DNA of 64,000 nt from Geosiphon pyriformis uo1 (taxonomy: Eukaryota; Fungi; Glomeromycota). The position numbers were made by a program, and so were the translations under genes. Location: assembly GCA_016748015.1 (NCBI GenBank), contig JAAOMT010000074.1, positions 124,001 through 188,000 of the forward strand. Reading direction: 5' to 3'. Each line of letters starts with the position of its first letter. Position 1 is the stretch's first letter. The notes beneath the pieces are model-generated. The model worked only from the letters and a program-made list of their open reading frames with translations, did not search any database and was not told the origin of the DNA. Positions 17,828 to 61,730 of this stretch are shown here, in pieces.

Positions 17828-18461
17828 CAGGAACCAAAAAAAATTTTGTGATGATGTACCTTTTTAATATAAAATTAATTAATATTAAACAATTTAATAA
17901 ATTATTTCTTAAAAATTTAATTTAATTATTTACAACTTAATTATTATATATTAAATATAGAATGTAGTATAAACATATAAATAATTATTTAAAATTAGAC
18001 AATAAAAACAAATTTATCTTATTAATACAACAAATTAAATAATTAATATTCTTAATAAATTTAGTTAATTAAATTTGTTTTTAATTTTAAAACTTTTTTT
18101 ATTTAGTTTAACAAGTAAAATTCAATTATTATTTAATACAATATAACAATTAAGTATTTTAAATTAAATATAACTTATGTTTTTTCTATATATAACCAGT
18201 TATTTAAACTAATTAAGACTATATTATACAATTATTTTAATTAAAATATTTTTAAATTAAAACTTATAATATAAATTTTTATAATATTAAGTATTTATGT
18301 ATTAATAATTTTGTGTTTATTAATTTATTTATTTTTTTATATTAATTAATGAGTGAGGTTCAAACATGACCTAATGCTATACATCATACCAATAATCTAA
18401 ACTAGGAGCAAATCATGCACTTTCTACACGTGACCAGCCACTCGAGCCAGTTAGGACAATA

Positions 18462-21400
18462 TTATACACCTATATGCACAGAGACTAAATCTCCAACATC
18501 TGAGAAAAATAAACAAAACTTACAAAATCCGAAACCAACCCCAAAAGCTTCAGCCACACCCAGCAACCTTACTATACCAGCCAAGAACACCATAGACAAA
18601 CCAGAAATTGATGTTAGAATAGAGCTGTCATAAGGGATCAAACCATGTTTTTCCATAAAAGCCTGGTGTTTGACATAAACCAACCAAATATCATCCTAAA
18701 ATGTGAAACAAAAGTTTTACACAAAGTCCACAATCTTTTTAGTCCCAACCTTAGAATCTTTAAAAACCAAGACAGATTTACAATACCAATTATTAAAAAC
18801 AAAGCTCTTATACAGAGCAACACCAATCCCAACCTCAGAAACACAAAAAACCAGCAACTGCAAAACACGTGAAGAGAATCAAAACAAACCAGAAAGAGCC
18901 TCCCAAGTTGAAGCATAAGTGTTCAACAACTGAACACAATCAGCAGTGTTATGAGGACAAGAAAAGATATGGTTTAAGACCTCAATATTACCACAGTACA
19001 AACACACCACACTGGGGTAACCCTTATCATACAAACGCTTACGAACAACAACTGGAAGCCAATGATAGAGGGCTTTCATGAAGTACATCTAACAACCAGC
19101 CATACGCATGCTAGTAAAACCAGCAACCAAGTAAAAATCAGGATGCCAAACCAGAGAGAACTTGAACCAATTAATATCAACACGCAAACTATTCACCACA
19201 ACCTGAGAACCAGATCCAATCTCCCATCGAGCATAATAAACAAAATGGAAAACATTATGTATAAAGTGTTTAGAGTTATCAGAAACCACTATATCACCAG
19301 TGCTCAGAAAATGTTCACTAACCAAGTAAGGCAAGTGCCAAACAGAAAGAACAGCATTCTTGGCAAGTGCATTAGCATGTTCATTGCCTGAGATGCCGGA
19401 ATGACTCTTAATCTTAATCCAAATTCTTATGACAAATGACATTAGCAATATGGTGACACTCAATCCAACAATGGTTTCTAAAATCTGGACAAACCAGCAG
19501 AGACTCTGACCTGCATGCATCCAAAGTGGCTTGACTGTCTGAAAACAAGTCAACCAAATGAAAAAGAGGCACACATTCAAAAGCCAAAGCAATGGCTTGC
19601 AATTCCATTAGAGTAGAAGAAACCAAACCAAATATCCCTACACTCAAACCTAAGTCAATGTCCTCAAAAAAGACCACAGCCCCAGCTTTCATGGCAACAG
19701 TTTTCAAACCACTCAGAGACCCATCCATGTACACAAAAAAACAGGCAGCGTTAGTAGCCGACAGATTGTTACAGATAACACCAAAATTATGAGATTGATG
19801 AACATCAGACAGAGTGGAATTTTTCACAAGAGAGGAGCACACAGAAGAAGAAGCAACACCACCAAAAAAACACACAGAAAGATCAAACCAGAAAAAAATC
19901 AGGCCATGGGAGTCCAACCTCTTCCAACACTTGAACATCTGCCAACTGAAAACAACATCATTTCAATCACGTAATTGTTCCACAAAAGTGATATCATATC
20001 GCTTGAGTAAAGAGACACATTTTAGAAAATTGATTTCACCAAGAACAAGAGACATAGGAGTACCACTCTGATAACAGAAAGCATAGGCCAGAGACCCACC
20101 CAGAAACAGATTACATCTGGAGAAAATATGAACCACACCTGTTAAGAAATTATTTGAAGAACTGATACTAACATGAACCAGAAACAGCAAGGGGTGACAA
20201 AGATGCCAGCTGAGAATCTAGAGATCATGAAACCTGTGAGAAAATAAGCAGCCCAAAATACCAACTGAATTTGCAAAAGCAATGACGGAAGCCAATTTGC
20301 TTTCTGCCTGAATTTGTTCAAAAGTTTTCAAATCATATAAAGAAGAATAATGAAGTGCATCATTGGGGAAATCAAGCAGCAGCCCAGACTTAGACTTCAA
20401 GACTTTGCAAATTAGAGTGTCCTATTTATTACACACACTAACAGAAAAAAAACTGAACCGAGTCTTATAGCTGATAATAGAGAACAGAACAACAGGAACC
20501 AAATAACTGAATTGTTTATCCAAGATGGCCTTTTTCAGAACAAGGTTGACAAAAAATTGGACATCCAAGTGAGTCTTGGCCAAGCTGGGCACTAAAAGAC
20601 CATTAGAAGACAAAAAAATACCAAGATAATAATAAGATTCATCTTTTTTGGCTATAGAAATAGGCAAGTCACTGACAGTTAGGTAAGAGGTCTCAACCCA
20701 GCAGTTGACAGAAATAGTCACAGTTTTGTTATTGTTAATCGAAATGTCATTAATCCTGAAGAACTCACTAGCAATATTCAAAATGTGTTGTGTAGTGGCC
20801 TGGCTGCTACCAACCCAGATGGTATCATCAACAAAAGCACTAGCAGCAAAAAACAATGTCAATCCAGCCTGAGATTCTACACAGCCAGTATTGAAAACAA
20901 AATGCGAATTCAACCTGTAATCATACATCTCCCCTTGCCTCTTGATCTCATATATAAGTGAATCATAAAATATGCACCAGAGAAGCAGCAAAAAAACTTC
21001 ACTCTAATTCAAACCATTATGCACCACATACCCACTAGTTAAGCCAAAATCTGTCATCACCCTGTTCCTGCAATTATTGTGGATGTTACCAAAAAATCTA
21101 ATGAACCTGTTACATATTTTAATCCTGATCAAACTCCTCTTGAGATGTTTTCAACCAACCAAATCATATGCTTTGCGCATGTCCTGTAAAACCAGCCACA
21201 GCTCTCTGTTTTTCTCCAAGGCATCTTCAACCATAGAACCAATGGCAAAAATAGGCGACTGCATTGTCGTACCCTTTAAAACAGAAAAATTGTCCCTTCA
21301 TAAAATGTCAAACTCACTGTAAACCAAAGATATTCTGTCAGATAAAATTTTAGAAAAGATCTTGTGGGCTGTTTCAATCAAAGCAATAGGATAGGTGTTC

Positions 21401-23128
21401 GTGAGAACACCCTCCCATTCATAGGGTTTAGGAATCATCGAAACCCAGGCTTCCTTCCAAGGTCCAGGCACCAACTCACAAACCAGGCAGAGATTCAAAA
21501 GCACCAAAAGCATATCCAAAACCACTCTGTTGTAATGCTTCCATAATTTATTAGAGATATTAGAAAGACCAGCTGCTTTTCCATCAGGCAAGCTCGAAAT
21601 GACACTACACATCTCATCATAACTAATCAATTTTATGACACCAGAGAAAACACCATTAAAAACGTAATCCAAAGACTGAAATTGGCATTTCCAATCATCA
21701 GAGAAATTTGAAACCACCAATCGTCTCCTAGTCTATCCCTCCATAATCCTGTCTACTTTAGATTTAACCAGCTCAGATTTCAAAACCAACTCATCATCCA
21801 CTACCAAATGATCTAACACTACCTTGTGAAATGGATGCTCTAAAACACTTTTGATAGTACAACTTTTATCCAACTCAAAACTCTCTATCCTACTCTCAAT
21901 GGCCTGTCTTATACAGCACACTTAGATTTCAGCATCTTGGAAGAGCAGTAAAACTTCCTTGCCTTAGCCAGCTCAGAGCAAATACCATTAAAACCAGACT
22001 CTGAAAGGAAAAGAGACTTCACCAATGAAGTGCCAACAGAGTCAAGTCTGTTTCATGTATCCAACAACAGAACAAAATCACTCCTAGAAGTCAAACAGAA
22101 AGCCTTTACCAGCTTAGAAACCAGCAACTCCAGCTTATGAAACCTAGAAGACACCTTATTGAAAACACTGTCAAAACCTTTGAACCACTTTTTCTTGAAA
22201 GTTTTACCTGCTGAAAGAATCATAATTTTGCGAATAATGTCCCATATTACATCCAAATCCGAAAGTTTCCCAGCCACAACAAATACATCTAAGAACATAG
22301 AAGCATTGGCAGCCATACCATCCCTGAACTCAGCCCACTTCAACTCATTTGCATCCTTGACATCAAACTTCCAGTGATCTTTATTGACTTGCTTATGTAT
22401 CGAAGAAAGACTTGTGTCTAACAAATCATTCAGACCCATAGAAACAAAAACAGCCTTATGATTAGTGTCAAAAAAATCATCAACATTTAACATGCCACAA
22501 TCCACAATTGCATTAATCAAGTTAGAAGAAAGAAACACATAATCAATTGTCTTAGCAACACCACAAGAATTGCACCAAGTTGGTAACTTAGCAAAAAAGC
22601 TCCCACCTAAAAAGTTGACCAAATCCAAATCAAAGCACTTCTTGAAACTGGTGCACTTGTGAGATCTGTCTTCATTGAAGTCACCACCAAGAATAACAAA
22701 GGAGAATTCATTTACAGCTTAGTATTGAGAGAATTAATTTCATTAGTCTAAGAAAAATGAATTGTCAAAGAGGCACCAGTATACAGCCCCAAAATGGAAA
22801 CAGAGAGTCTGTTCCTGAAAAGCAATTTTACCAACAGGAGCTAACTGGACACCTCTAGAACCTTGCACACATGTTTTGCCAGAGATGAGTTCATAATAAT
22901 TGCAACACCAGATCCCATGTGACCAGAATTCAGACCTAAAGTAAAAACACGAACACCAGCAAACCTATCCACAATCCAGGGGTGGATTTTTCCCTTCAAC
23001 TTTGTTTCAGTAACAACAGAAATTAGATTGTTCATATTATTATGCCAACATATGATGTCCATCTGTTTTGCACAACTGTTCATTCTTTTAACATTGCACG
23101 TAGCAATCTTCCAAGTAAACTCACTCAT
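18462..23128 (-). pseudogene. LINE copy 1 ORF2 (APE endonuclease, RT, RNase H, C-terminal CCHC), disrupted
   Basis: IATCNV, VTETKL, GGDFNE, TIDYVF, DTNHKAV; PIALIET, QDMRKAYD, AFVDDTIW; VYMDGS, ELQAIALA, FSDSQA, KSHSGISGNEHANALA; CLYCGNIEVLNHIFSC. Confidence 0.93.
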
Positions 23129-25036
23129 TAAGAAAGGGGTTGTGGAAGTGTACCAGCAGCCAGAGCCAAACTGTCAAAATGAGCAGACAAACTCAGCACT
23201 GAAGCAGCAAGGCCTTCTAACATATTTTCCAACTTAACAACATGGGGGAACACAGAAGAGTTCTTCACAATATAAGTAGCAATAGCAGTTTCATTACAAG
23301 TGAACTCACCCAAATCTACTCCCATCACTATATCCTCCTCTTGATTCTATGATGGGGGGGGAGTTACCAGCAGCTAACATCCAGGGCTAGACTGAGGAAC
23401 TGCTGGCATGAGTGACTCCAATCTCTTAGCCAACTCACCAATTTGTCTCACAAGGCTAATAAGACTGCTTTCAATGCTAACCAACTGTTTTTTCAAATCA
23501 TTTACAACAGGAGAAAGAGGTTTACCATTATTAATGAAACCAGAAGAAGGAACCTGTCGACAAAAAGAAACACCAGAAGAAGCACCAATTACTGACACCC
23601 AAGTTCTTCCATCAAACAAAGCCAGGCGAGAGACAAAAGCTGATTTTTTTTTTATAAATTACAGCCAGACAAACACGATCCTGATCAGAAACCACTCATC
23701 TCCTACGAACTCCAGAACTCCCACCCACAGAGCAGTTGGCAGTGATATGACCAAATTGTGTATACTGTGTGCAATATGCCAAGCAAAGACCAGTCCAGCA
23801 CAAATTCACACTCTTAAAAACTGGAATTAAACCAACAACAGCCAACTTGGACGCCTCATTCTCAAAACAAATCACAGCACACTGATTACGAACATATAAA
23901 AAAGGATTACGGCCAATAAAACAAGTCTTCCCATCATATGATTCAAGTAAACCAGAGAGATCATAAGCTGTAGTGCCAACAGGTAAGGTATACAACAATG
24001 CCTGATGTTGATCCCTTAATACCCATGTTTGTTTATTCTCTATAGCCAAAGCCACATGCACAGAATCTTTCTCTACCAGAACAGACCACTTGGAAGCAAT
24101 CTGGTTGGCAACTTCAGCTGACTTAAACTCTACTAGGGCCTTTTGTCAAAGACCAATTAACTGCATCCTGACTGATTTGATTGCACCAAACTTGGAAAAC
24201 ACTGCCACAATTGCCAATTTGGGAAGATTTACTGAAATCTCCTTGATGATCACCTCCTGATTTGTACGAATGTTTGCTTTTTTCAAATTATCATTAACCA
24301 AAATCTTCTCATTAATTGCCATCTTCCTAGCTTTATTTAAACTAAACTCTAATGTAAAAAATGATCTGATAATCTCTGGGAATTTTGAGGGAGCAGAAGT
24401 CTCACCAAAGCCATCCACTCAATAAAAAATTTTTTTAACTGAAATCAATTTGTCACTAACAGACTTCCCAGACACAGCTGATAAATCCACATCCAAAGTA
24501 AACAATTTTATAGGCTCGAAATGATGACTTCCCAGAGCACATGACTTGGGTGGCGACAATTGATTGGATCCACTAAACGTGCGAGAAGGGAGCTTTAGAG
24601 TACTATTGTCATCATTCATGTGTCCAAAAGAAGGCTGCTTTGGTGGACTGCCTAGTACGTATGTGCAAGTACAAGTCTTCTTCAGCATAGCGTCATCCAT
24701 ATTGTCATCCTTGCCCGATTCTACAAAGCTGGTCTCTTTGGCAACCATATTCACCATGTTTTCGACATCCAAGAGATTGCCCACACTGCTGACAACACTG
24801 CTTACATTGCTTTCCCAAGAAACCAGAGGCTTGTCACTGGCATCTCCAATATCTTCCAAGCTTAAAAGACCAGCAGACGAATTCAACACCACACCGACGA
24901 CAGGTATTTTCGGCTTCTTATAGGATGCACCACAAAAGTAGACAGTATTCACACACTTATTTTTGGTGGCCAAACAGGTCCCCAAACCCACCAAACCAGA
25001 ATTTGGACCACCAGCAGAAGAGCCTATTGGTTCCAT
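23125..25036 (-). pseudogene. LINE copy 1 ORF1 (two RRM-like domains + CCHC knuckle), disrupted
   Basis: IIKEISVNLPKLAIVAVFSKFGAIKSVRMQL, ALLYTLPVGTTAYDL and CTQYTQFGHITANC; internal stops. Confidence 0.85.
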
Positions 25037-25390
25037 CGTAACAAACAGGGGTGTATTAAAAGAAATAACTTAAGATAAAAAGGGAAAAAGAAAAAGGAAA
25101 AGCTATACTGTTAATATAATCTTCACTCTCGTTGTGGTCAGGGGATTGACGAGAGAAAGATTTTTAAAAATATTTTTTTAACTCATAAAAATTTTCATAT
25201 TAAAATAAGTTTTTTTTTAAATTAAATTTGGTTAAATTTTTTATTAATAAAAATATGTTTAAATAATAATAATAAGATTTAAAAGCTTTATAATTAAAAC
25301 AAAAAAACAATTTATATTTAAAACAGTATTTTTAATATTAAAATTAATTAAATAATTATTTAATTTTTTTTTATATTAATAAAAATTTTA

Positions 25391-26093
25391 AATGACAAGA
25401 ATTATCCAAGTGTTTTGTGCCTAATGTGTGGTGAGATTGAATTCTCTGATCATGTTTTTACGTGCTCAGCAGATGTGATTGTGCATTCTGAAGTTGTCTT
25501 CAGTCATATTAATTTATGGAAATCTCTGATGGGTGATCATTTCTCAGTGTCTTCTTCAGTGTTCCATACATTCACAAATGCATCTGATAATGGTATATAT
25601 GCTATATTGTGCAAAGAGTTTGTCCTTATGGATTGGGTTAAGAAAGCTGTTTCTATTTTTGGTGACAAAAAAAAAGCCATGTCAATTGTTGTTGAGTTTG
25701 TCCACTATTTGGCTGATGATCATTGTGGTAAAGCTTGGGTGCTAAGGTCTAAATTTTGAGCTAATATGGAAAAGTGTGGTTTGGTTTGCAACACAAGTGA
25801 GGTATTTGCTTCTCTCCATGGCTTGTCTGACTTGCTGTCTGTAGGTGTAATTCATATGCTTGGGGTTTTGGAGTCTTTTGCTGTTAGCTTTGGATCTAGA
25901 AAGCAGTACTCATTTTTTTCAGGCTTAGATAATAGTAGGGAGGTTTTTGTAAATATGTAGTGCTGCCTTGATGGGCTTGAGTGGCTCATCACATATAAGA
26001 AGCGCATGAGCCATCTCTAGTTTGATTCATTTTGCTTTGTTTTTGTATACTAAATAGTAGTTAGGCTGCATTCATTAAATAATAAAAAAAAAA
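25391..26093 (+). mobile_element. 5'-truncated LINE (copy 3): ORF2 C-terminus, 3'UTR and poly(A)
   Basis: DKNYPSVLCLMCGEIEFSDHVFTC is homologous to the CCHC region of copies 1 and 2; similar 3'UTR ending CATTAAATAATAAAAAAAAAA. Confidence 0.9.
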
Positions 26094-26333
26094 TTTATTA
26101 AAATAAAGATATTTAAAAAAATATATTACCAAAAACTATAATATTAAAAAATAAAAATTACAATATTTTTTTTTTTTAATTGTTAAAAAATTCAAAACAA
26201 TTATAAAATCTTTCTCTTGTTAATCCCCTAGCCACTATGAGAGTGAAAAATTTTTGGAGGAAATTACTTTACTTTATTCCTTTTTTCTTTGTTCATTTAA
26301 GTCATTTCTTTTAATATACCCCCTTTTGTTACA

Positions 26334-28277
26334 ATAGAACCAGTAGGCTCTTCTGCTGAAGTTTCTGGCTCAGTTTCAACTGGTTTGGAGACCCACCTGA
26401 ATGTTAAGAAAAATCATTTGGATACCATTTACTCCTGTAGTGCATCCTATAAAAAAACAAAAAAGCATGTGATTGGCATCATGGTTGATTCATTTGCAGG
26501 TCTTCTGAGCTTAAAAAAGGTTGGTGATGTTGGCATTAAACCTGTGGTGTTTTGGGGCAGCAAAGTTGGTAGCATAACCAGTAGTGTAAATGATTTATCA
26601 GATGTTGAAAACATGGCAAACACAGTAGCCAAAGAGACCAGTTATACAGAATCGGGTGAGGATGATGGTATGGACAAAACTACACCAAAATAAACACACA
26701 CTTAGACATATGTACTTGGAAATTCATCAAAGCAACCTTCTTTCAATTGTATAAGTAATGATAATAGTGAGCTAGTACTTCCTCTTCAGATAGTTTTGGG
26801 ATCCAATGGGCTGCCACTGAGAGGATCACATACCATGGAAATGTGGAGCTTCAATTTGTCGAAGTCTTTCACACTTGATATTGAACTTTCAGCTGTGCTT
26901 GATAAGAATGTTGGTGATAAGTTGATCTGTGTAAAAAAAAATTTCTATTGAGTAGATGGTTTTGGAGGAGCTTCTACTTCCTTAAAATTCTCAAAGATTA
27001 TCAAATCCTTATTTACTTCTGAATCTAGCATGAATAGGGCAAGAAAATTGGCAATTTATGAGAAAATTGTGGTAAATAATGATCTCAAAAAGGTTAGCAG
27101 CCATTCAGATAAGGAAATTATTGTCAAGGAGATTCTGGTCGATCTTCCCAAATCAGCTGTAGAATCTGTTTTTTCTAAGTTTGAGAAGATTATTTCAATT
27201 AAAATACAATTGATTGGTCTGTGGCAAAAAGCATTAGTGGAGTTTGAATCATCTGAAGTAGCTGATTTGGTTGCAGCTAAATGATCTGTTTTCATGAGAA
27301 AAGATTCTGTTCATGTAGCAAAAGCTGTTGATAATAAACTATCATGGGTTTCCAGGAATCTATATCAAGCATTGCTTTATACTCTTCCAGTTGGTACAAT
27401 GGCTCATAATCTCTCTGATTTGTTGGATTCATATGGTGAGAAAACTTGTTTCATTGGCCATAATCCTAGTTTATATGTGTGTAATAGATGTATAATTGTG
27501 TGTTTTGTCGATGAGGCATCCAAATTGGCTGCTATTGGTTCTATTCTAGTGTTTAAGGGTGTAAATTTGTGCTGGGCTGGTCTTTTTTTGGCCTGTTGCA
27601 CTTAATACAAACAGTTTGGTCATATATCTACAAGATGTTTATTGGGTAAGAATTCTGGTGTTCATGGCAGATGAGTGGTAACTCTTCAGGATCAGGTTCG
27701 TTTGGCAAACATATATAAGAAGAAGCAAATGTTTATTGCTCATCCAGTTTTGTTCAGTAGGAAAACTTGAGCCCAGATGGCTAGTGTTTCTTCTTCTCAT
27801 GTGGTTTTGTCGGGTTTTTTTGGTGCTGGTCTGTCTTCAGGTGCTAAACCTGTCCTATTAGTGTCTAATTCTCTTGATAATTCCTGTTTGATTGATCATT
27901 TGGCTTCTTTGAAATGCTTTTTGGAGCTTTTAGTGGATCAGGTTTCAGATATTTTGAAAAAATTAAGTTTTGTGGAATTGGTGCCTTTGATGTCCAGTCC
28001 TCATGTGTCTCCTCTGGTTATTATTGCATCTGTTGCAGCTAATGTAAACTCGGATATGGTTCTAGATATTACACTGGAGTCTCCTCCTCCCCCTTTTTTA
28101 GTTGTTGTAGATTCAGTTGCTAATCTTAGTTCAAGTAATTCTAGAGTTTTGACCACCAAGATGGGTGGATTGGAATCTAAGATGATGGCTTTAGAGGTGT
28201 CAGTTAAATCTGTTTTGGATAGATTGGATCATTTGTGCTCTGGTTTGGAATTATCAACTCCTCTTACTCCTCAATGA
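26334..28277 (+). pseudogene. LINE copy 2 ORF1, disrupted
   Basis: Colinear with copy 1 ORF1 (IIVKEILVDLPKSAVESVFSKF, ALLYTLPVGT); many stops. Confidence 0.85.
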
Positions 28278-31200
28278 GTGACTTAGTGTGAAAACTTGCA
28301 ATTTGTAACATTCACAGTATTAATGTTTTTGCCAAGCAGGAAGATATTATCCGCTAGCATAGAGATTCTGGAAATTTGGTTTCAATAATTACTGAGACAA
28401 AGCTAAGGTCTAATAGTAGGCTTTGGATTAGGGATAAGTTTGATAGAATTAGAGTTTTTTCATCTGGATTGGACAAGAGGTTTCTTAGTGCTGGAATTGC
28501 AATCATTATTAACACTTCTCTAGCTTATTATGTTTGTAAGATTTCTGAAGTGCTTAGAAATGGAATGAGTTCAATGAGTAATCTTTGGTTGGCTCCTTTC
28601 AATCAGATTGTTGTTCAGAAATAAATGTTCTGTGTCTATTTTGGGGCTATATGTTGGCACTTCATTGGTAATTTGGTTCTTTCAGGCTAATAAAGTCAAC
28701 TCTCTCATTGCAAAGACAGTGAATAAGCTTTCCTTCATTGTATTGGGTGGTGATTTCAATGAAGACAGTGCCTGAAAGTGTGCTAGCTTCAAGAAGTGCT
28801 TTGAATTGGGTTTAGTTGATTCTCTAAGAGGAAATTCATTTGTTAAGATGCTTACATAAACCAATTCTTATGGTGTTGCTAAAGCTTTCGATTATATTCT
28901 TGCTTTTTTAAGTTTGGTCAATGCTGTAATAAATGATAGTGTGGCCAGTGTTGAGGAATATTTTAATACCAATCACAAAGCTGTTTCTACTTCTGTGAGT
29001 TTGAGTGGTTTGCTCGATATCCAGTTGAGTTCAATGTGCAAACAGGCAAATAAAAATCATTGGAAGTTTGATATTAGAAGTGTGGATAAAACAAAATAGT
29101 ATAAGTTTAAGGATGCAACTGCAGCCAATGTTGCCATGTTCTTAGATGAGTTTGGGCTGGCCAGAAGATTGTCTGATCTGGATGTTATATGGAACATTGT
29201 TCCCAAAGTGATAATTTTTTTGGCTAATAGAATGTTCAAAAAGAAATGGTTTAAGGATTATGATGAGATGTTTACCAAAGAGTCTTTCAAGTTGCATAAC
29301 TTGGAGATTTTGGTTTCAAAAATTGTTAAGGCTTCTTGCAAGGTGAACTCAGGCCAGTTTGAGTCTTTTTTAAAATGCTGGGTTTCTCTGAATAGTGTCA
29401 AAGCTTCTGTTGTTCAGAATCTTGTGAGCTCTGGAGCAAGTTTGAATCATGTCTGTTCTGCTTTCTGTGGTGTGAGAAGGTCTTATCATGCCTCTAAACT
29501 AAGTCTCTGCAAGCTGAGGAGTCGGGCATAAGATCAACTATTAAAAGAAAAATGGAGAATTTTATGGTCAACAAAGGCCACATAATTCGTAGTGTTTTGG
29601 AATATTCATTCCACAAAGTTGTGTTGGATCATTTGGTTTCTGATGGCAGTTTGATTTTGGACCCAGTAGAAGTTAAGAGTAAAGTGGATAGTATAATAGA
29701 GAGCTGGACAAGAAAGAAAGTCATGCTAATAAGTGTTTCCAATTTGTGGCAATGTCAATATCTGCTGTTAGATTATGTCAATGATAATGCTTTTTCTGGT
29801 GTGATAAATGTTATCAGTTTGGATGAATTGACGCATGTGATTAAAGATTTACTGGATAGTAAAACTGCTGGTTTGTCTGGCATTTCAAATAAACTTTGGA
29901 AATATTGCGATGGTTCTGTGCTGGACTTGCTTCTGGATCTTTTGAACATTTGTTTGGTATGTGAGTCAGTTTCTTGTTATTGGAAAGAAGCTTGGGTGTC
30001 AATAATTCCTAAGCTCTATGAGTGGAAGGGTGTCTTAACAAATATTAGACTGATTGCTTTAATTGAGACTGCTCGTAAAATTCTTTTTAAGTTGCTGTTT
30101 GACAGGATTTCATCAACATGTAGTTTATTCAACATTCTGTGTGGGAACAATTTTTCTGTGCTCAAAAGTACTACTACTCAGTCTCCTATTTTTGCCATTG
30201 ATTTAGTTGTTGAAAATGCTTTGAAGAAAGATTGTGAACTTTGGCTTGTGTTTTAAGATATGTGTAAAGCCTATAACTCTGTGGATTGGCATTACTTGTA
30301 TAATAGTTTGGTTCAGATCAAAATGTGTAGGTGTTTTATTAGATTTTTTGGTTCTGTTCACAATGACCGTGTTAATTGAGTTATGACTGATTTTGGTCTA
30401 ACTTATGAATATTGAGTACATGATAGTCTTGACTAGGGTAAGGTTTTCTCTTCTTTGTTGTGGAGGATTTTTTATGACTCTCTTTTGTGTAAGATCAAGA
30501 GACAGAAGAGTTTGTGTGGATATCATATCAATACTAAATTTGTAGCTAGAACAGGTAGGATAGAAAACCAAAGCAGTTTAATTTCATTTCTGGCTGCTGG
30601 TGCATTTGTAGATAATACTATTTGGATGAGTAGCAGTCAAGCTGCCACTTAGTATATTTTGGACACTGCAAGTGAATTTTTTAGGGTGAATGACATTTCT
30701 ATCAATAACAAAAAAACTGTGGCCATTCCTATCAATCAAAGAGTTAGTGATGCATCATTGTTAATTAGTGGTCTACTGATTTTAGTTGCTTGCAAAAAGA
30801 AGTCTTATTGGTATCTTGGCATTTATTTATCATCTAAAGATTTATCCAAACCCAGTTTAGCTAAGACATATGTAAACATCAGATTTTTTGTTAATTTGGT
30901 TCTAAAGAAGGCTATTTTGGACAAGCAGTTTTTTTATCTGGTATCAGCTATATTGCAAACCATTGTCAATTATAGGATTCAGTTCAGCTTCATTTCTAAG
31001 AATATGTGTACAAGGTGGGATACATTAATTAGAAGGGAGTTAAGACTTAAAGCTAAACTTCCAAAAAACTTTTCCAATGAGACTCTTCACTATTTGTCTT
31101 TGTATAGTTTGAAATCTTTTGAGCAGTTGCAGATTAAGTACAAGGTAGCTTCTATGTTGTGTTTTTTAAATGCTGGTGGTATTTTTGGTCATTTGTTCAA

Positions 31201-32983
31201 TCATAAGTCTCTGAATCTTTAAGTTCTGGGTTGATCACTTATTCACCCTTTATGTTGTCTGATTAAGTTGTGTGTCAGTCCAGTCAATAATTTTTTGGCA
31301 GGTGTTGTCAAGATTTTTTTGGACTGTGACATGTCTCTTAACAATCTTTCTGTTTCTGCATTCTGCTTTTCTAGTGGAACACTAATATCTACAGTTTTGG
31401 AAGCTTCTTTGTTTCATGATGTTTCTTTTTCTTTTAAGAGGTTTGGAGTTACTTTTGCTGAGCAGTTGTATACCAAAAATGGTTTGGTTTTCGATTGGAA
31501 TAGCTTTTAATATTGGAAGAAACTTAATCCAAGAGGCTCTGTCCCTTATTGGTTCACTTTGGTTCGTGATTTTTTGGTTTGATCTTTTATTTCTGATAAT
31601 TTGCATGTTGAAGATTTGCAGACTATGAATGTTTACAGCTCGGGTGTAGTCTCCAGATTGGGCCAGTGCTTCTCTTCTGCAAATATGAGAGTTGTTAGTG
31701 TTTACACTGATGGGTTGTTAAAAGATTTAGGTTTATGTGAGATGAAGTGTAATGCTGCTGCTTACTTCTCTGATCTGGGTTTAGATATTGGTGCTAAGAT
31801 TAGTGAAATGATGTCTTTGACTATGGCAGAACTGCAGGCAATTGCTTTGGCTTTGAAGTGTGTTCCCCTTAACAGTTTAGTAGTGGTTTATTCAGACAGT
31901 CAGGCCATCTTGGATGCATATGTGGCTGAATCTGCTCTGGTGTCTCCAGACTTCTGCAATCACTACTAAATAGAATAGTGTGGCATTGTTAATTTAATTA
32001 AGGGAAAGCGGCTTGATGTTTCTTAGTACAAGGTTAAAGGACATTCAGGTGTTGTGGATAATAAGCATACTGATGAGTTGGCCAATCTGGTTGCAAGTTC
32101 TTTTTTGGCACTTTCTGTGTTAGTTAAGAAAAAATTTGTTAGAGCTGGTAAGATAGTGATGTCTGGAAACATTTATTATTTTGCTTGTGAGATTTTTAGG
32201 TCCATTAATCGTGCTTATTGAAAGATTGGTCTTGGTTTTAATGTTATTAATAATGGTTTACTTGGTAATGTGGATTGGTCCTGTGCTGCCTCGGTGTAGT
32301 ACCCTGACTCTCATATAGTGACTGGCTTTACCAGTAAATCTATGGCTAATTTGCACTCTTATTTTTTGAAGGCTCTCCACCGCTATTTACTGGTTGCTGT
32401 ACAGAAGCATTTGTATAGTAAGATTTACCTAAGTGTTTCATGTCTGCACTGTGGTGAAATGAAAAGTTTCAACCACTCTTTTGTTTGTGCATTTGACTCT
32501 GGAGCTCGTAAGAACATTCTTGAGTCTTATCTGGCCAAGTGGTATTATGTGTCTGCATTGGGCTTGCCATCATTTCATATCTTATAGATGCTTTCTTTGT
32601 GTGTCTCCAATGATATGTTGTATACCACCATGAGCAAAGGCTTTGTGTTCAAAGATTGGGTTTGGGAAGCTACATACATTCTGAGTAATACCAAGGTCAT
32701 AAGAAAATTTATTGTTGGTTTTGTTTAAAAATTGGGTGCTGCTCACCACATAGATATTTGGTTGGTTAGAGCTAAATATAGAGTATTGATAGAAAAAAGC
32801 AATTTAATTCCACTTAATGGTTCTGTGTATTTTGTGACTCATGGTTTGTCTTGTTTGTTTTTAGCTGGGGTGGTTAGATTGCTTGGGATTGCTGAGGCAC
32901 TTGGTATTTGCTTTGGTTTTCATAAACATTGCTGTTTTTTTTCTGGTATAGATAGTGTGGTTTTTGTTCTGATAAACTTGTAG
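28274..32983 (+). pseudogene. LINE copy 2 ORF2 (APE-RT-RNase H-CCHC), disrupted
   Basis: ITETKL, GGDFNE, LIALIETARK, AFVDNTIW, VYTDGLL, ELQAIALAL, YSDSQA, KVKGHSG, CLHCGE; many W/Q/R-to-stop changes. Confidence 0.93.
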
Positions 32984-33119
32984 TATTGCTCTGACTGGTC
33001 CGAATGGTTGGTCACATGTAGAAAGTGCATAATTAGTGCCTAGTTTAGATCACTTAGTTTAATGTATTGTATTAGGTGGTTTTTGGGCCTTATTCATTAA
33101 ATGTTAATAAAAAAAAAAA

Positions 33120-34300
33120 TTACAATATTAAAAATAAAAATAGAATTAAAAATCACAATAAAATTTTTTGATTTTAAAAATAACCAAAAAAAAATTAATA
33201 AACTTAATTTTAACAATAATAATATTTAAAAAACTTAAAAATACAAATTTTATATAAATAAATTCAATATTATTTTTAATAAATCAATTTTATTTTAATA
33301 AAATTATGCAATAATTAAAACACAGTTTTAATATAAGTTATTTTAATTTTTATAATAATATTAAAAATAAAAATAAAAATTTTTTACTTTAAAATTTTTT
33401 TAATAATTAGTAATTATTTTTTTAAAATATTATTAAAACTAATATTATTATTAAAAAACAAAGAAAAAAAAAAGAGTTTTAGTTTTTATTTTATTAATTT
33501 AATTTTTGTAATTAGATTATTTAATAATATAATTAGTTAAAATTAAATGTAAAAACATAAATTGTTTTGTATTTATAATTTATTATATTAGACAATATAA
33601 TTAAATATTAATTTAATAAAGTTTTAATTAACATATTATTGCTATTATTTGTTAAAAAAAAACTTTTGTTTATAACCAAAATATAATAAAATATAATAAT
33701 TAATATTATCATAATAAAATTAATAAAATATTAAAAATTGTTTTGAAAAAAAATTGAATTGTTTTGATTTTTTTATTCAAGTAAAAAAGTTTAAAACTTT
33801 AAACTTGAACAATATAAAAAAAAAACTGAATAAACAAATTTAATTTTTAAATATAGTTTAAATTTCATTTTAAAACCATTTTATTATATATTTTGAAATA
33901 ATTTATAATAAATAATTTTATTTATTACATTTAGTTAAATCTTTAATGGAATTCAGATTTTGAATTTACTTTATTCATATTCCAATTAAATATGTAATAT
34001 TTTTAATGAAAGCAAGTTTGAAAATAAATATACTCTTTTTAACAAAATATATATAAAAATTCTTATATATTTTTCCAACATAATTAAGCATTTTTTATTT
34101 ATTTTTTAAATAAATAAATATGAAAAAGAATTTTTTTTTAAAAACGTTATACTTTTATTTTATACAAACACAATTAGTTATAAAAAAAAAATGCAAGCAT
34201 CTTGAAATCAACTCATTATTTGATTTTTTGAACAAAAAGTTATGTCCAGTTCTTACATAAAAATACTTATCCTTAAAATTGATAATTTTAATTTCACTAT
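33120..34300. repeat. Extremely AT-rich eroded repeat block
   Basis: Shares CACAGTTTTAATATAA..TATTTTAATTTTTATAATAAT and TTGTTTA(C/T)AACCAAAATA with 15360-15640. Confidence 0.7.
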
Positions 34301-39759: not shown

Positions 39760-40300
39760 AAACAATAAGTTTTAATTACAGTTATTAATATTAAAATAAT
39801 AAAATATTTAATCAAAAATTGTATAATTATTTTTTTAATTATATTTTGGACTTCAATATTTATAATAAAATTGGACTAAAATAACACAAAAACACAATTA
39901 AATTTATTAAAAAACCAATCTTAATAACAATAAATCCAACTAAATTTAACGATTTCTGAAACTAAAATTTAAAAAAATCATTTTTTAATAACAAAAATTA
40001 ATATTAATCAAGTTATTAATAAAAATAATAATATGTAATTTAAAAAAAAAAACAACAGTTTTAATATGTAATATATCAAATTAATAAACCAATTAACAAA
40101 AATTTTAAATATAATAAAAAACTTAAAATTTAGTATAAAAAAAAGTAACAAAAAACGACTTTACAAGCAAAAAACAAAATAATTAAAACTTTAATATTTG
40201 TAAAAATACCAATATTCAAAAATAATTTGTCAAATACGATTTTTATACAAAAGTATTAGTTTTAACAATTACTTTATTAAAAGCTTTTTTAAATTTAATA
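39760..40300 (-). mobile_element. Probable hyper-eroded antisense LINE fragment (endonuclease C-terminus/linker)
   Basis: Minus strand reads KK*F..ILVSEIVK (about 40000-39945) versus KKWF...ILVSKIVK in copy 2; other matches are weaker. Confidence 0.45.
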
Positions 40301-40877
40301 ATATTAAAAAAATATATATTATTAAATTTGTATTTTAATTATTATATAATTTTATTGTTGTTTTTTTTATTATGTTTTAATAAAGTCTAATATAATTATT
40401 AATTATAACATAAAATTTCAAAATCTTATAAATTACTGTAATTTATGAATTTTTTACATATAATTGATTATTTACAAAAAAGTCTAAATAATTATTAAAT
40501 ATATTATTTTTATGCAAAAAATTTAAATTATATTTTATTTTAAGATTTACATAAATTATTAATTATATAGTTAAAAATACCAATATTTTTTTTAATTATA
40601 AAAATTTTTATTTTATTTTAATATTTAAAAAAAACATCAATTAACTTTGTAATTAAAAAAACAAAAATATTAAAAGATTTAACAATAAATTTAACCAATA
40701 AAACTAATTTAATTATTTTAAATTCCAAAAAAGCAAATTTAAAATTGATTACAAAATTTACAATTTTTAATAGTCTTAATATAATAATTTGTATTTTAAG
40801 ATTAATTACAAACTTAAATAAAGATTTTTTAAAAAAAACAAAAGTATTATATAATTAAACAGTATAGAAAATAAAAT

Positions 40878-42308
40878 ATGTTTAATTATTAATAAAAAGA
40901 TTTAATATTAATTTTGCTAATTAGTTTTTAAATTATTGTAATTTGTTTTTTATTTGGAAATATTTCTAATATTATAAGAAATTAAATTTTAAAAATTTAG
41001 TTTTTGTGTAATTTAGTTATATTATTGTATTTATTAAAAATAAAAGTTTTATAAACTAATATGTTTTAAATGTTTTTAATAGTTTTTATTTATATTAATT
41101 TTAATTAAATTGTTTTAAGATAACTAAAAAGTATTTATTAATACTAGTATAAATATTAATGCTGTTTTCTATTTTTTATATCCGAATTTTAAATAAAAAT
41201 TAGTGTTTATAATATGTTTTTATCTATTATAATTAAAGCAGTTGTTTTAATATGATTAATAATAATTGTATTGATTTTTTTGTTAATATTTATATAAATT
41301 TACTTTTTATTTTATATTTTAATATTTATAAATATTATTTGGTTGTTAAAAACTAATTTATTTTAAAAAATATGTAATATTTTATTGGAAAATTGTTTAA
41401 TATTATTTTTATTAGTTAAAAATTAAAATATATTAAAAAATTTATAAACAAATTATTAATCTGTAATTTTTATTTAATATGTATTTTAATATTTAGATAA
41501 ACATATATATTTTACGTTAATAAGATTAATAATTACTAATTTTTGTTTTTATTTTATTAAAACTTTATATAAATATCTGTTAGTTGTTTTAAAAAAAAAT
41601 TGTATATTTTATTATATTTAAATGTTATTTGTTTATATTGTAAATTGATAAAAAATTCAAATTATATTTTTTTGTATAATGTTAATTTTCTTATTAAAAA
41701 AATATTGTTTCAAGTACTATTGTAAAGTAAGTATATATTTTTGGTTATTTAATTGCAAATTTACTAATTATTTAATTTTTACACAATTTATTTGCTAAAA
41801 ATCGTCTTTATATGACTGTAATTAAGAATTTGGTTTTAAAAATTTGGTTTTTTAAAACTATAAAAGTGTTTAATAATACCAAAAAAATTATTGTATATAT
41901 CATTTTATTTGTATATAATATAATAATTTATTATAAAACAAATATTTGATTGTTCAATACTAAATTGCAAATGTTTTATAAGTTTTAAAATTTGTTAATT
42001 AGTAATAATTTGGTATTATCAATAATTAAAAATTTGTTTTATAATAGCTTTAGTGTAAATATTTACAAAATTAGTTTTAATTTAAATATTTAGATTATAT
42101 TTAATCTTATTAACTTTTTAGCTTTAATGTTTTTTAAGTTTTATAATAATATTTATACTTCTTATAATATAGATTTATAATATTATTTTAATAGTATAAA
42201 TAACTAATTATATATAAAAAAATCATGAATTATATTTATTTTAAAATTTTATTTAATTATATATTAATAAATAATAATTAAATTGTATTTATTAAATAAA
42301 TAAATAAA
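40878..42308 (+). mobile_element. Hyper-eroded LINE (copy 4): post-RT region, CCHC region, C-terminus, 3'UTR and tail
   Basis: KRFNINFAN*..IWKYF*YYKKLNFKN (from 40895), KKLY..NVICLYC (CLYC 41630-41641), LYMTVIKNLVLKIW (from 41806) and NIDL* (stop 42178-42180), then a 3'UTR matching a C>T/G>A-converted version of copies 1-3. Confidence 0.85.
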
Positions 42309-42412: not shown

Positions 42413-43385
42413 TGTTACCAGTAGAATTTTAGCTATCAATTAGCATGAAATTACTCTTATAATTTCTATAAATTAATTAGTATATTAATATCATTTCAAA
42501 TTATCACTTATTATTTAATTAATTATCACATATCACAATTCAATTAAATAATCCAATTAGTATGACAGAAAGTAGGATGATCAAATTATACAATACCCTG
42601 AACTTTGTAACATTCTAAAATTCGCTGAAATTTATAAAAATTCACCGAAATTATGAATAGTTCACCCAAATTAATCAATAGTTCAGCAAAATAACTTGTA
42701 GTTTATCAAAATGTATCTTTAGTTTGCTGAAATTTGAGCAAAGAGAAAAAGTGCAAGTCCATAGACTAGTACTACAACAAGTTGTATAAAAGAAGAGCTT
42801 TTCTCTTCAAGAAAATGTATCTTACTTTAGATTTATCACTTAGAACTATTCCTATACACAAAAAAAAGAAATAAATATCAAATAATTTGAAAAACCAAAT
42901 TCTTTAATATTGCACTTGGAACATCCCCAAAATCCAACTAGCATTTTGAAATTGATTAACTACCAATTTCAGTAAACTGTTAGTAACTCCAGGCCTGGAT
43001 AGAAAACGTTTCTCTTGACAGAATTCTATTTCTTTTACATTTTTTTTACATTTCTTTTATTTTCTTATTATAATTATCAGGGTAGCCTACAGACAAGATT
43101 CCTGTAGAAGAGTTAACTTTTACAGCAAAGTAACTACACATTTTTAGTGAGCTTCCAGATGAGCAATTTCTGGGAAAGAGTTGACGTTTACTACAATGTA
43201 ACTACATAAAGTAATTGGCAAGGAATTGGCCATTCCACTTATAAGCCCAGCAAGTTCAAATTATAAAAGATAATTTGAAAATAAATTCAGTTACTGGAGG
43301 TTCAACTACTTCCTGAAAACGTGAATTCACAGCAAATCAACATTAACAACATTCAAGAAAAGAGACCAAAAAACCTCCAGTAACA
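42413..43385. mobile_element. Solo-LTR-like insertion (973 bp)
   Basis: Termini TGTTAC...GTAACA; ATTT on both sides (42409-42412, 43386-43389); internal TATAAAAG at about 42785; much higher GC than the flanks, which rejoin as a homolog of 15110-15250. Confidence 0.75.
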
Positions 43386-44330
43386 ATTTTTTTAATTAAA
43401 CAAAAAAATTTTAATATTGTTTTTTTTTTATTAAAATTAATTAATAAATAAAAGTAGTTATAATAATATTATAAAACTTAAATTAAATATAATATATTAT
43501 TAAATACCAATAGATTTTAATTTAATATTAAAAATTTCATTACTATTTTAAAAAATAAACTAAATCTTAATATTATAATAAAATTTATATTAATAATTAA
43601 AAAAAATAAGTTTATTAAAAAATTAATTTTTTTAATTACATATTTTATTATACAAAAATAAATCTTATAATTTAAATTTTAATAAACACAATTTGTATTT
43701 AAAAACTTTATTTATTATTTAATAATTAAAAATAATAGCAAAAATTATAGTTTTAATATAAAATATTAAATTAAAAAATTAATTAACAGAAATTTTAAAC
43801 TTAATAAATAGGTTTAAAAATGTTTTAACAAATTAAAAATAGTATTTTTATAATTAAAAACTATGTAATTTAAACTTTAATACTTATAATAATACTAATA
43901 TTTAAAAGTTTTTTATTAAATACAACTTTTTTTTAAGATATTAATTTTAATAATAACAAATTAAAAAAGTATTTTTTAAAATTAAAAATAATAATAATTT
44001 TTTTTAACAATAGTTAAATTTAAAAAACCAAGAAATAAAACAAGTTTAATTATAAATTTGAGAATTAAATTATTAATTTCAAAAAAAATAGTTAAAAAAA
44101 ATCAATTAACTTGAATTTAAATATATTATAAAAAAATTTCTTCAATATTTTTGGTTATTATAATAAATTACAAATAAAAACAGCTTTAAATATATTAAAA
44201 ATTTTAAATTAAACAATAATATATTATTATAAATTATTAAACTTTAAAATTTTATTAAAATATTAAGTATTTTTAATATTATTAATAAATATATTTTTTT
44301 TTATTAATATTTAACAAATAAAGTCCAACT
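43386..44330. repeat. Extremely AT-rich eroded repeat block (continues 42310-42412)
   Basis: Aligns to 14590-15320, e.g. AAATAAAACAAGTTTAATTAT in both. Confidence 0.75.
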
Positions 44331-44977
44331 GTTATTTAATATATAAAATCAAACTAAATAGCTTAATCTAAATACAATTTATGCTCTTATTACATGTGGT
44401 CAACTACTTGGATCAGACAAAACAATAATAAACATCTATACTAACACATATATTTTCACCTAAACCTAATACTAAACTATTATCTTTGATTAATCCAGCT
44501 TTTTTTATATTCATTCTATGCTTGAACTTTACAAATCATACTTTAATACAATGCAATTCTATCAGATGTCTTACATATTTAACAACAATAGAAGCAGTTT
44601 TTTCTTTTCTATTAAAAACCATAACAGTTACCATATATCAGTCTCTTAGCACAAATCTTTTGTAAATTGCTGTATATAAACTCACATATAAATATATTTT
44701 TCAAGTGTCCTGGATGATCATGATTGAGTGTTAAAATATAAAATACAGCATCAAATAGTTCTTCGCCATTCGCGTCAACATTTACAATGGTTCCTGGGAA
44801 AAATAAATCGGGACTAAAAAATACCTGGATACTTATCTACAATCACGTGAAATATCGATATATGATGCGCACGTTCCTAGATGGTGTTTGATTTGGTAAA
44901 TCGCGGCGCGTCAAATTTATCAAAATTTCGTTTATTATTCTTGACAACCTTTGCGCTATTATTGACGGACATCAAAA

Positions 44978-46822
44978 ATGCCTGGCGGAAAATCCAAAAA
45001 AATAAAAGTAGATTGGCTAGCTATTGAGCCTCCAAAACTGAGGGTTTTTATTTCTTATTTTCTTGCTTCGGAGCTGTATTGGTGGTCAAAGAACGCTCTG
45101 GCTTGGGAACCCAAAAAACATATGATATTTTACAGTGTTTTCTCCTCTTCTCACCGTAATAAATAAGTCTGCGACCAACAGAAATGGTGCTTCCCAGAAA
45201 AAACGTATAGACTCTCAAATCTTTTACTGAAAGAATCACCTATCAATTCCGCATTGAAAATATAATATGAAAGCTTTTGTGCCTCTTTGTAGCCTTAGGT
45301 CCACATGAAGAAGATGATTGTGGCTTTGTCTTTGTCAGGAAACGTAACTTAACGACAGATTTTTCAGCATCGATGGGCTACATAGAAAATCCGCAATCAT
45401 CGAACACACAGGCATCCCAAACCTGGGCCGAGAAATCACAAACACCTGAAAAACCCTTAAAACGCTCTAGTCCTGTTTTATCACATTCCAAACTCACACC
45501 AGAAGCTAAAACTCCTTCAAGAACATTGGAATCAATAGTTGCCATACCTCTTGCAGAGACACCCATGATAAGAAAAAATCAAGAAATTCGAAAAGGCAGA
45601 AGAAGATCAAGTTTGGAGATGAGAGGAAAAAGAACCTCCACCATTGGAATGGGGATCATGCGTATGGAAAAATCCGAGTCATTTTTTTATTAGATCTATT
45701 TATTTCATCATTTATTTTCTCTTTTAGTCAAACCACATGCAAGTCTCGATCCCAAAGAATTCTATCGCCACATTAAGGTAGAGCTGCCTGGCCCTCACAA
45801 AATGAAACAGTTGTTAGTATGGTGCGGTCAGCGTGCCATTGAGAAACAAAAAGCAAAAGATGAGAATATTCTTAAAATAGGTAAAAGTTCAAAGTTGGGG
45901 TATTAGTAATTTTTGAGGCTGGCCATTGATCTTTATTTTGTTTACTTTTCCGGAATCTTCTTTTTCTCATACAGCCAAGATAGTAGAAGAAGAAATTCTC
46001 AATAAAATGATGAACAATCAAATAAATACTTCGTGGTATAACCGGAAGGTTTTTACATTCAAATCTTGACATGATTTACTCAAAATAATTAATATTGCAC
46101 GCGTTAATACTTTTTTTTTACGAAATTTAGATTATCCATGACCTAAATCAAGACTCACCTCAAAAAAAGCAGCATCCTCAAAATATTGAAAATGAAAAAA
46201 AATTAAGAGAATACGAAGATACACTTTCAAGGTCAGATAACTCAAACAATGGAAAAACTTCACGTTTCTTTATTCTCGCTTCGGATTTATTTTGAATCTT
46301 GCCAATTCTTTATCTTTCATGAAAGGCTAAAAGCTGAAGATCAAGAATGGACCGATCTTATAAGAAATGTAAATTCGTATCATGCCTCTATTTTGGATGA
46401 TTGTGCGAATTTGCCGCCAAACAAATTAATGACATCCAATCCACTGGATACGACAGATATCTCACTATTAACCGAAGAAGAAAGGCAGTATTTGGAAAAT
46501 TATTGCTCAAAAGATAAAAATCTTGCTGAAGATCAGTTCGCCGAAGAGACTATGACAACGATTGAATGCGAGGTAATTAAAAAACATAATTAGGATCTTC
46601 TATTAATATTTAATTTTAATTCTGTTCTTGATATGATTATTTTAGATTGATCAATTTTACCAAAGGTTGTACAATGCATACGTATTTGAGGAGGCAGCAC
46701 AAATATATTGCGATAGCATGCTTGAAAAACTTCGTGATGCTTTAAGAAAACGACAGCAAGGCAATATTGAGTCCAGTCTAGAAATCAAAGAAGTGTTGAG
46801 AGCATTGACGGGTAAGTCTTAA
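44978..46822 (+). CDS. DSN1: Kinetochore Mis12-complex subunit Dsn1/Mis13, multi-exon (5' exons tentative)
   Basis: EEDDCGFVFVR, ETPMIRKNQEIRK, RRRSSLEMRGKRTS, PHASLDPKEFYRHI, MKQLLVWCGQRA, TSWYNR, HPQNIEN; stop TAA 46820-46822. Confidence 0.88.
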
Positions 46823-50389: not shown

Positions 50390-50461
<72 letters not shown>

Positions 50462-51618: not shown

Positions 51619-51929
51619 TTTTCTTTAATTTTCCGAAAACAAGATTTGAAATATTTTTTCTAGTAGAATTTGTGTGTTTAAAGAGAAAGGTAAATTTAAC
51701 CGAGATTTTTGTAGTAAAGTAAAGAAAAAGAAAAAGTAAACAGAATTGTTGGGGTAGAAGAATGATAAGTGAGAGGTAAAGTGAGATTTTTTTATGATAG
51801 AGAAATAAATGGAAAGGTGAAAAATTTGTATAAATGAACAGAGTATTATTCATATAAATTCTAAAAGCCAGGTCAAAATAGACGGGATGGGGTAAAAGTT
51901 GAAAAAAGAGAAATAGAAACGGAAACAAA

Positions 51930-52985: not shown

Positions 52986-53318
52986 TTATTTTTATTATTT
53001 TTATAATTTTTATTATTTTTATTTTTGATATATAAAAAAAAATTGAAACAGGTTATTAATAAATTTAGGCTTCAAAAAACTTTTTTTTTTTATCGGACGG
53101 CCAATCTATTGATTTTTTAAATACACATGTGCTCTCAGATCTTGTTATAATCTAAAATAGGAAAAAAACAATGATGAGTACGACTATTAAGAAAAAAAAA
53201 CGGAATTTCTTTTAATTTTAAGTATTATTAATATTCTCGGGTGAAATTGAAAAATTTTTGGCGGTGAAAAAAGAAAAAAAAACTTTATCAAAAATCTAAT
53301 ATTTGGGTATTAAATAGT

Positions 53319-53354
<36 letters not shown>

Positions 53355-53419
53355 TAAGAATATAACAATAATAATAATAATAATAATAACTGAAATAATA
53401 ATAATAATACTAATAACTA

Positions 53420-53515
<96 letters not shown>

Positions 53516-54194: not shown

Positions 54195-54244
<50 letters not shown>

Positions 54245-54263
54245 TTGTTTTTGTTGTTGTTGT

Positions 54264-54310
<47 letters not shown>

Positions 54311-54841: not shown

Positions 54842-54884
<43 letters not shown>

Positions 54885-55087: not shown

Positions 55088-55126
<39 letters not shown>

Positions 55127-55288: not shown

Positions 55289-55320
<32 letters not shown>

Positions 55321-61611: not shown

Positions 61612-61612
<1 letters not shown>

Positions 61613-61708
<96 letters not shown>

Positions 61709-61730
61709 TCATTTTTTTATATTATTATTA

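Follow-up and report, generated by a model that had tools for sequence, protein, structure and literature searches.

An eroded LINE end in an AT desert

The 64,000-nt stretch of Geosiphon pyriformis (Glomeromycotina) DNA analysed here, hereafter the window, alternates between host genes and young LINEs of 33-40% GC and deserts of 8-12% GC, and about 18% of it lies under 15% GC. What are these deserts, and by what process could they have arisen? For one of them, at 40878-42308, an earlier note had proposed a LINE whose protein and 3' UTR could still be read after near-total C>T and G>A erosion. Our analysis supports this identity: the readable part, window 40,893-42,308 (+), is confirmed on sequence comparison as the 3' end of a LINE, 5'-truncated and internally deleted (Table 1). 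This ghost, as we call it, is now near-pure A/T, some 85-90% of its C and G having gone, and in itself is an ordinary dead LINE.

The peptides quoted in the earlier note were recovered where it had read them: the KRF...F block at 40895-41017 (counterpart in copy 2 at 31436), KKLY...CLYC at ~41594-41644 (copy 1 at 19040) and LYMT... in frame +1 from ~41806 (copy 2 at 32618), followed in the expected place by the terminal NIDL* and the eroded 3' UTR. Ghosts of the RNase H motif GHSG (~41235-41255) and of a CxxC..H..C zinc knuckle (~41630-41680) are also present, in an ORF2 C-terminus that contains numerous stops and is shifted in frame at a few places by 1 nt. Under a profile scan the element falls into three blocks, 40899-41050, 41240-41386 and 41532-42308, colinear with copy 2; comparison with copy 2 (31585-32039) shows that about 260 nt, carrying the N-terminal half of RNase H, are absent or cannot be aligned at ~41070-41199. 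The 5' truncation falls near 40893, at an end not sharply delimited within 10%-GC DNA.

Table 1. Features of the window and related loci (window positions unless a locus is named)
Feature	Position	Strand	Basis or remark
Ghost, 5'-most readable block	40893..41069	+	ORF2 between RT and RNase H, KRF...WF motif; 52 bits vs null max 24
Ghost, unaligned stretch	41070..41198	+	Profile scan and RY alignment
Ghost, ORF2 C-terminus	41199..42180	+	RNase H C-terminal half, zinc knuckle, terminal NIDL*
Ghost, 3' UTR core	42168..42290	+	A/T vs C/G site retention against UTR consensus
Ghost, (TAAA)n tail	42291..42308	+	As in GC-rich copies
Copy 1, full-length degenerate LINE	18300..25247	-	38% GC, CpG o/e 0.21
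Copy 2, full-length degenerate LINE	26113..33170	+	35% GC, CpG o/e 0.12
Copy 3, 5'-truncated LINE 3' end	25392..26093	+	Match reaches about 25142-26143
Second ghost 3' UTR	18093..18247	-	12% GC; 13/57 C/G kept, 44 transitions, 1 transversion in all
Partly eroded 3' end, intermediate stage	44294..44488	-	About 21% GC
Second-element ghosts	14846-15314, 15785-16000, 33171-33638, 39906-40269, 43402-43542, 43614-44296	-	RY alignment
Second element, other loci	L008 15782-13482; L010 about 22200-24500		
Host exon, SYS1	1867-2247		
Host exon, SOG2	9892-11178		
Host exon, TauD	34950-35387		
Host exon, MIS13	45277-45693		
Host exon, LIM	58501-58944		
Host exon, phosphatidylserine decarboxylase	63035-63469		

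Nine further loci yielded about 30 more LINE ends; these copies were fetched via protein models, and the sample is thus biased to GC-rich, coding-competent copies. LINE subfamilies differ by 10-27% in purine/pyrimidine (RY) space, and the ghost is of a subfamily different from copies 1-3. Since it is only 78-82% RY-identical to its best matches among every copy sampled (0.82-0.85 for the 5' block against copies at L009 and L010), its subfamily lies outside the sample, and the 15-20% transversion differences in its coding part mostly reflect subfamily divergence. Because no same-subfamily partner was found among about 30 copies, the age estimate of the ghost rests on the 106-site UTR.

The family itself has the make-up of a LINE, with an ORF2 carrying endonuclease, RT and RNase H (the ghost retains the C-terminal part only), a 3' UTR ending in an A-rich tail, 5' truncation and no LTRs. 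Domain searches gave a strong RNase_H match (E 6e-13, P0053) and weak, below cut-off matches to RVT_1 (E 6e-4) and Exo_endo_phos (E 0.011); APE-like motifs were read in copy 1 and the C-terminal CCHC motif by eye. Two ORFs, an APE-like N-terminus, RT, RNase H, C-terminal CCHC, a conserved 3' UTR, an A-rich tail and frequent 5' truncation are all shared with fungal APE-type non-LTR retrotransposons that carry RNase H. Unlike usual fungal LINEs, the ten protein models checked, all from G. pyriformis, are each singletons at 90% identity. Homologue searches returned G. pyriformis models only, where names were available, and 591 representatives remained at 50% clustering; hundreds of relatives standing apart even at this level are what copy-by-copy mutation would be expected to leave. 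A search with the ORF at 19089-19592 returned nothing because that ORF spans a frameshift. A public gene model for RNase P Rpp40 (window 16282-19728; L001 1451-4897) seems to enter the 3' end of copy 1 and is likely a fused annotation.

Controls on the homology

Plain blastn and tblastn were swamped by AT-rich and low-complexity matches, among which the true match was not distinguishable, and long low-penalty alignments over AT DNA, which drifted into noise beyond the 5' end of the ghost (upstream of 40.9 kb), were set aside. Ordinary nucleotide scoring of the ghost against the copies gave 41-45, the level of shuffles. In RY space, the comparison that the earlier note had proposed, scores were 358 for copy 1 and 420 for copy 2, against a shuffle mean of about 94 and a maximum of 174 (25 window shuffles and 25 dinucleotide shuffles per copy); the reverse complement gave 84-98. 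Of seven other deserts put through the RY control, six were at background and the seventh contains another LINE end, at 44.3-44.5 kb.

The proposed table of substitution directions fared less well. Dominance of C>T and G>A is indeed seen, but it is not diagnostic by itself: RY alignment of a shuffled ghost yields the same table, and such an excess is bound to appear in any alignment to 10%-GC DNA. What discriminates is whether A/T sites and purine/pyrimidine class are retained, and in the ghost they are. When alignments were anchored on A/T alone, scoring consensus A/T columns and ignoring C/G columns, the ghost reached 201 against 80+/-8 for shuffles. This test is not circular because the C/G columns are unscored; in these columns, C was replaced by T at 0.56 and by A at 0.28, and G by A at 0.57 and by T at 0.27, compared with 0.47/0.47 and 0.36/0.54 in one shuffled control. 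In each trinucleotide context with data, 81-100% of C has been lost relative to the closest copy.

The failure of standard scoring to find any link is what one would expect of low-complexity AT DNA that resembles a LINE by chance, or of an assembly artefact. Against such an explanation, which we regard as exceedingly improbable, the scores lie far beyond all shuffles under four scoring schemes, the colinear blocks end in a UTR and tail with 49/49 consensus A/T sites of the UTR kept, and further ghosts are present on other contigs. Chance similarity as the source of the match is refuted.

A continuum of erosion

The LINE 3' UTR is conserved across subfamilies and provides the cleanest test of erosion. 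Beside its intact A/T sites, the ghost UTR keeps 5 of 57 C/G sites, the others having undergone 47 C>T or G>A changes and five transversions. The GC content of about 30 UTR copies (34 matches) grades continuously from 41% down to 5%; along this series retained C/G sites fall from 44/58 to 5/57 and the transversion load increases with erosion (rho 0.65, p 7e-5). Erosion is equal at codon positions 1, 2 and 3, which indicates that it postdates insertion; together with the stops, this equality excludes an AT-rich active subfamily as the source.

A clock-like mutation pattern on both strands

The rates of the process rest on two young pairs of copies. Transitions outnumber transversions by 489:20 over 5,947 sites in the L005/L006 pair and by 311:14 over 3,999 sites in an inverted pair within L006; counted over the last 1.6 kb of these pairs, the ratios are 141:2 and 131:2. 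Simple outgroup polarisation was misleading because the outgroups have mutated too; a mixture estimate on outgroup states, used instead, assigns essentially all (about 100%) of the non-CpG transitions to the strong-to-weak direction, C>T/G>A. Measured against transversions (34 in 9,946 sites), non-CpG C>T is elevated about 40-fold and CpG about 200-fold per site.

Partners carry equal loads (256/233 for L005/L006, 155/156 for the L006 pair), and C>T and G>A are about equal in each copy, so that both strands are struck. The young pairs have no strand runs (runs tests p 0.29-0.52) and no neighbour clustering or co-mutation, even at 8-10% divergence. Nor is there any excess of CC>TT in them, doubles numbering 16 in the same copy vs 21 in opposite copies, and UV mutagenesis was rejected for want of such tandem changes. 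Of the adjacent changes, 81 affect opposite copies and 28 the same copy, as expected if the first hit destroys a CpG. APOBEC-type editing of retroelement cDNA was also rejected, the one-strand, clustered G>A that it leaves being absent and C>T approximating G>A per copy. The process behaves as a steady clock, unclustered and symmetric between partners, with transversions increasing with erosion. The earlier note had read the desert as the end state of a repeat-directed cytosine mutation process acting in essentially all dinucleotide contexts. Restriction to repeats and reach into every context both held; the contexts are, however, unequal, and the tempo is that of a clock rather than of a RIP burst.

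It would be tempting to attribute such a pattern to true RIP, in which homology pairing in a sexual or parasexual stage would lead to RID-dependent bursts of C>T, many rounds of which could blur the strand bias, under a new context preference. Changes that are transition-only, repeat-restricted and on both strands would fit, RID is reported in the AM clade (PMC8298701), and AT-converging copies stay similar, so that pairing could persist. We nevertheless consider RIP in this sense unlikely. CpA is not preferred, and bursts have left neither clusters nor strand runs, although many rounds could hide them. The linked inverted L006 pair is no more mutated than the unlinked pair (one pair of each kind, which may differ in age), composite and RIP indices are negative for copies 1-3, and erosion also affects copies for which the sampled loci, covering little of the genome, contain no close partner.

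Sequence context

In the young pairs the loss per C is 0.53 at CpG and 0.14 elsewhere, and non-CpG sites account for about two thirds of C>T (523/776 scored sites). Non-CpG loss depends on the 5' base (T 0.21, C 0.13, A 0.10, G 0.09) and on the 3' base (C 0.19, A 0.12, T 0.115), with no preference for CpA, and T at +/-2 doubles the rate of C loss relative to G. CpG hazards are 0.72-0.82 whatever the 5' base. The same 5'-T bias recurs in a mid-stage pair (37% vs 21% GC; loss 0.74 vs 0.48) and among survivors in 281 desert tiles (0.05 vs 0.15).

A bias of this kind raises the question of whether a TpC-preferring cytidine deaminase, APOBEC- or DddA-like, acts on double-stranded repeat DNA and adds non-CpG mutations to ordinary CpG decay. 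DddA-type enzymes favour TC in dsDNA, bacterial endosymbionts occur in AM fungi, and the 2-3-fold increase of non-CpG loss by 5'-T in young pairs, with its recurrence at later stages, speaks for this possibility. The bias is mild, however, and CpG dominates regardless of the 5' base; there are neither kataegis-like clusters nor the strand asymmetry that editing of retrotransposon cDNA leaves. We therefore think a deaminase of this type quite improbable.

Eroded repeats and spared host DNA

Erosion by C>T and G>A is restricted to repeats, and host genes and short intergenic DNA are spared. Among these genes, the SOG2 exon matches G9A89_021167 of G. pyriformis (contig JAAOMT010000074.1, GCA_016748015.1) at 98% identity. 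Four-fold sites of host genes have 35% GC and short intergenics 27-32%, and CpG o/e is 0.8-1.1 in genes vs 0.1-0.2 in LINEs (0.12-0.21 in copies 1 and 2). This bears on ordinary neutral decay, in which a strong genomic AT bias would let repeats drift to about 10% GC while selection or biased gene conversion keeps genes GC-richer. Clock-like behaviour and transversions that increase with erosion would accord with neutral decay; moreover, AM fungal genomes are AT-rich in general and a locus of Ambispora also has an AT-rich, CpG-poor stretch. Usual spontaneous spectra have a transition:transversion ratio of about 1-4:1, far below the 22-24:1 (65-70:1 at the 3' end) observed here, and the composition of four-fold sites and the CpG contrast between genes and LINEs likewise argue against neutral decay, to which we give little credence. 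That CpG dominance is confined to repeats points to methylation. The Ambispora gerdemannii stretch (L011 6000-8500, between the SOG2 and BAR genes) has 8-20% GC; in this very small sample we found no 5'-T depletion of survivors and no clear match to the Geosiphon LINE.

Most other deserts in the window are ghosts of a second element (6-13% GC, RY identity 0.81-0.89, scores 150-396 vs null max 96). In its GC-rich copy the LINE 3' UTR that both elements share comes immediately after an ORF1-like gene, with no ORF2, and the element is likely a non-autonomous, ORF1-only LINE derivative, HAL1-like in kind. Just upstream of the ghost, 40380-40507 (-) is a marginal candidate for a further ghost 3' UTR (96 vs null max 90, 60 shuffles). 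An eroded repeat of ~100 nt is common to three deserts (window 40661-40764, L002 3024-3121, L005 5708-5790), each time adjoining a LINE 3' end. Young LINEs are almost always flanked by sharp-bordered deserts (L002, L003, L005, L006, L008, L010; window 18.1-18.3 kb and 33.2 kb); insertion of young LINEs into old deserts would account for the sharp 40%/10% GC borders and for layered nests of different ages. Between two ghosts, window 42500-43380 is an island of 28-30% GC, CpG-poor and lacking a long ORF, perhaps a partly eroded repeat. Trinucleotide (AAT/GAT-type) tracts and low-complexity ORFs with strong GC skew and no Pfam match occupy 49847-51928, 53300-53600, 54056-55400 and 61600-61830, and many pure (AAT)n arrays have an RY pattern in common with GC-richer triplet repeats.

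The ghost as an end point

GC-rich copies evolved in simulation at young-pair rates reached 10.6% GC after about ten pair-divergence units. The simulation predicts 3.5-4% transversions, against 4.7% observed in the ghost UTR, and reproduces survivors in the four commonest contexts (ACA 0.18/0.17, ACT 0.16/0.13, TCA 0.048/0.044, TCT 0.050/0.055), which a context-free model does not. Over 12 testable contexts the context model was not better by rank correlation (0.66 vs 0.75 for the flat model), and ACC/CCA survivors (TTGG/CCAA words, pooled deserts) were commoner than predicted (0.2-0.3 vs 0.06-0.16). As young-pair rates yield the main survivor pattern and the transversion load of the ghost, it is most plausibly an old copy that has been exposed to a steady, clock-like mutator.

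Discussion

We suggest, as the more probable explanation of the pattern, that methylation-coupled deamination targeted to heterochromatin steadily erodes repeats, and that the ghost is an old LINE insertion so eroded. What the sequences show directly is how the copies have mutated and that the changes are confined to repeats; which enzyme acts, when, and on what signal is inferred from this. Once inserted, LINE copies lose C on both strands, base by base and with almost no back-mutation, and after ~10 times the young-pair divergence time a copy stands at about 10% GC, invisible to ordinary alignment. Under the proposed model, repeats would be marked by dense 5-methylcytosine, at CpG via DNMT1/DNMT5 and at non-CpG sites via a heterochromatin-recruited enzyme of DIM-2 type, and the C so marked would turn into T by enzyme-promoted or unrepaired deamination in ordinary nuclear divisions. 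AM fungi are reported to keep DNMT1, DNMT2, DNMT5, DIM-2 and RID (PMC8298701) and to carry CG methylation on TEs (10.1101/2021.03.30.436303), and in Zymoseptoria tritici Dim2 has been demonstrated to drive C>T in repeats during mitosis (PMC8016269). Since AT-rich flanks raise the rate, erosion can feed itself. Against methylation, neither the CpA preference of Zymoseptoria Dim2 nor the CpT preference of Neurospora DIM-2 matches the 5'-T bias.

It is conceivable, though we would put this at slightly under even chances, that a cytosine mutator other than RIP, enzyme-driven and directed at repeats, operates in Geosiphon (clock-like, CpG >> TpC > others, boosted where flanks are AT-rich) and has converted a large part of the genome to unrecognisable 10%-GC transposon ghosts. 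If so, the copies would provide alignment-level evidence for mutagenic genome defence in Glomeromycotina, and the mutator would have escaped notice until now because neither CpA-based indices nor ordinary repeat masking can detect it. Repeat-restricted C>T in Glomeromycotina could mean that mutagenic repeat defence lies deeper in the fungal tree, or that it had an independent origin; it gives a testable function for the DIM-2 and RID genes retained in the AM clade and bears on the question of whether repeat mutagenesis needs sex. More practically, the AT deserts are uncounted transposons, TE ages based on divergence are inflated, and many 'hypothetical proteins' of the Geosiphon genome are pieces of mutated LINEs.

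Comparison with known systems

A 2025 kingdom-wide screen found RIP-like signatures confined to ascomycetes, with CpA preference common to them (PMC12543289), and Geosiphon was not found in the text and supplement searched. For Gigaspora margarita and Mucoromycotina, RIP signatures are said to be lacking, AM fungi being described as without RIP (10.1101/2021.03.30.436303), and a TE survey that includes Geosiphon does not mention RIP (PMC11952901). Outside the two papers that described the genome of Geosiphon (Curr Biol 2021, Environ Microbiol 2024), in which an earlier mention is possible, the literature searched has no report of repeat mutagenesis in this lineage, and Zoophthora radicans (Zoopagomycota) is the one hint outside Dikarya. 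The index-based RIP signal in Zoophthora (PMC10515909) is, like ours, an indication of repeat mutagenesis outside Dikarya; it consists of dinucleotide indices, whereas Geosiphon, of a different phylum, offers aligned pairs, direction, context and a graded series.

RIP of Neurospora crassa, which depends on RID, shares with Geosiphon the repeat-restricted C:G>T:A change on both strands, gene-poor AT-rich blocks and bimodal GC (PMC4943192). As in Neurospora-type RIP, changes in repeats are almost exclusively C:G>T:A and unique DNA is spared, but two defining features of RIP, CpA preference and dense strand-biased bursts, are lacking: in Geosiphon, whose lineage lies outside Dikarya, CpG is the strongest target, a 5'-T bias is present and changes accumulate like a clock and without clustering. 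By standard RIP indices, young copies score negative and the ghost only weakly positive, which would explain why screens miss the process. At about 8-12% GC, the end state equals or falls below the lowest value that the OcculterCut survey gives for AT-rich regions, 12.3% (PMC4943192).

The process would be a variant of methylation-linked repeat mutagenesis, new for a lineage that has no such record in the literature searched. The mitotic Dim2 mutator of Z. tritici resembles it in producing C>T in repeats without need for a cross, there in methylated repeats and with >95% transitions; unlike in Geosiphon, where CpG is struck at the highest rate and CpA has no preference, >98% of its changes are at CpA and CpG is spared (PMC8016269). 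The CpG/TpCpG methylation-deamination signature of basidiomycetes and Tuber (PMC4352252) likewise has CpG lost fastest and is confined to repeats. Geosiphon differs from it in that C>T is mostly non-CpG and erosion goes on to near-total loss of C.
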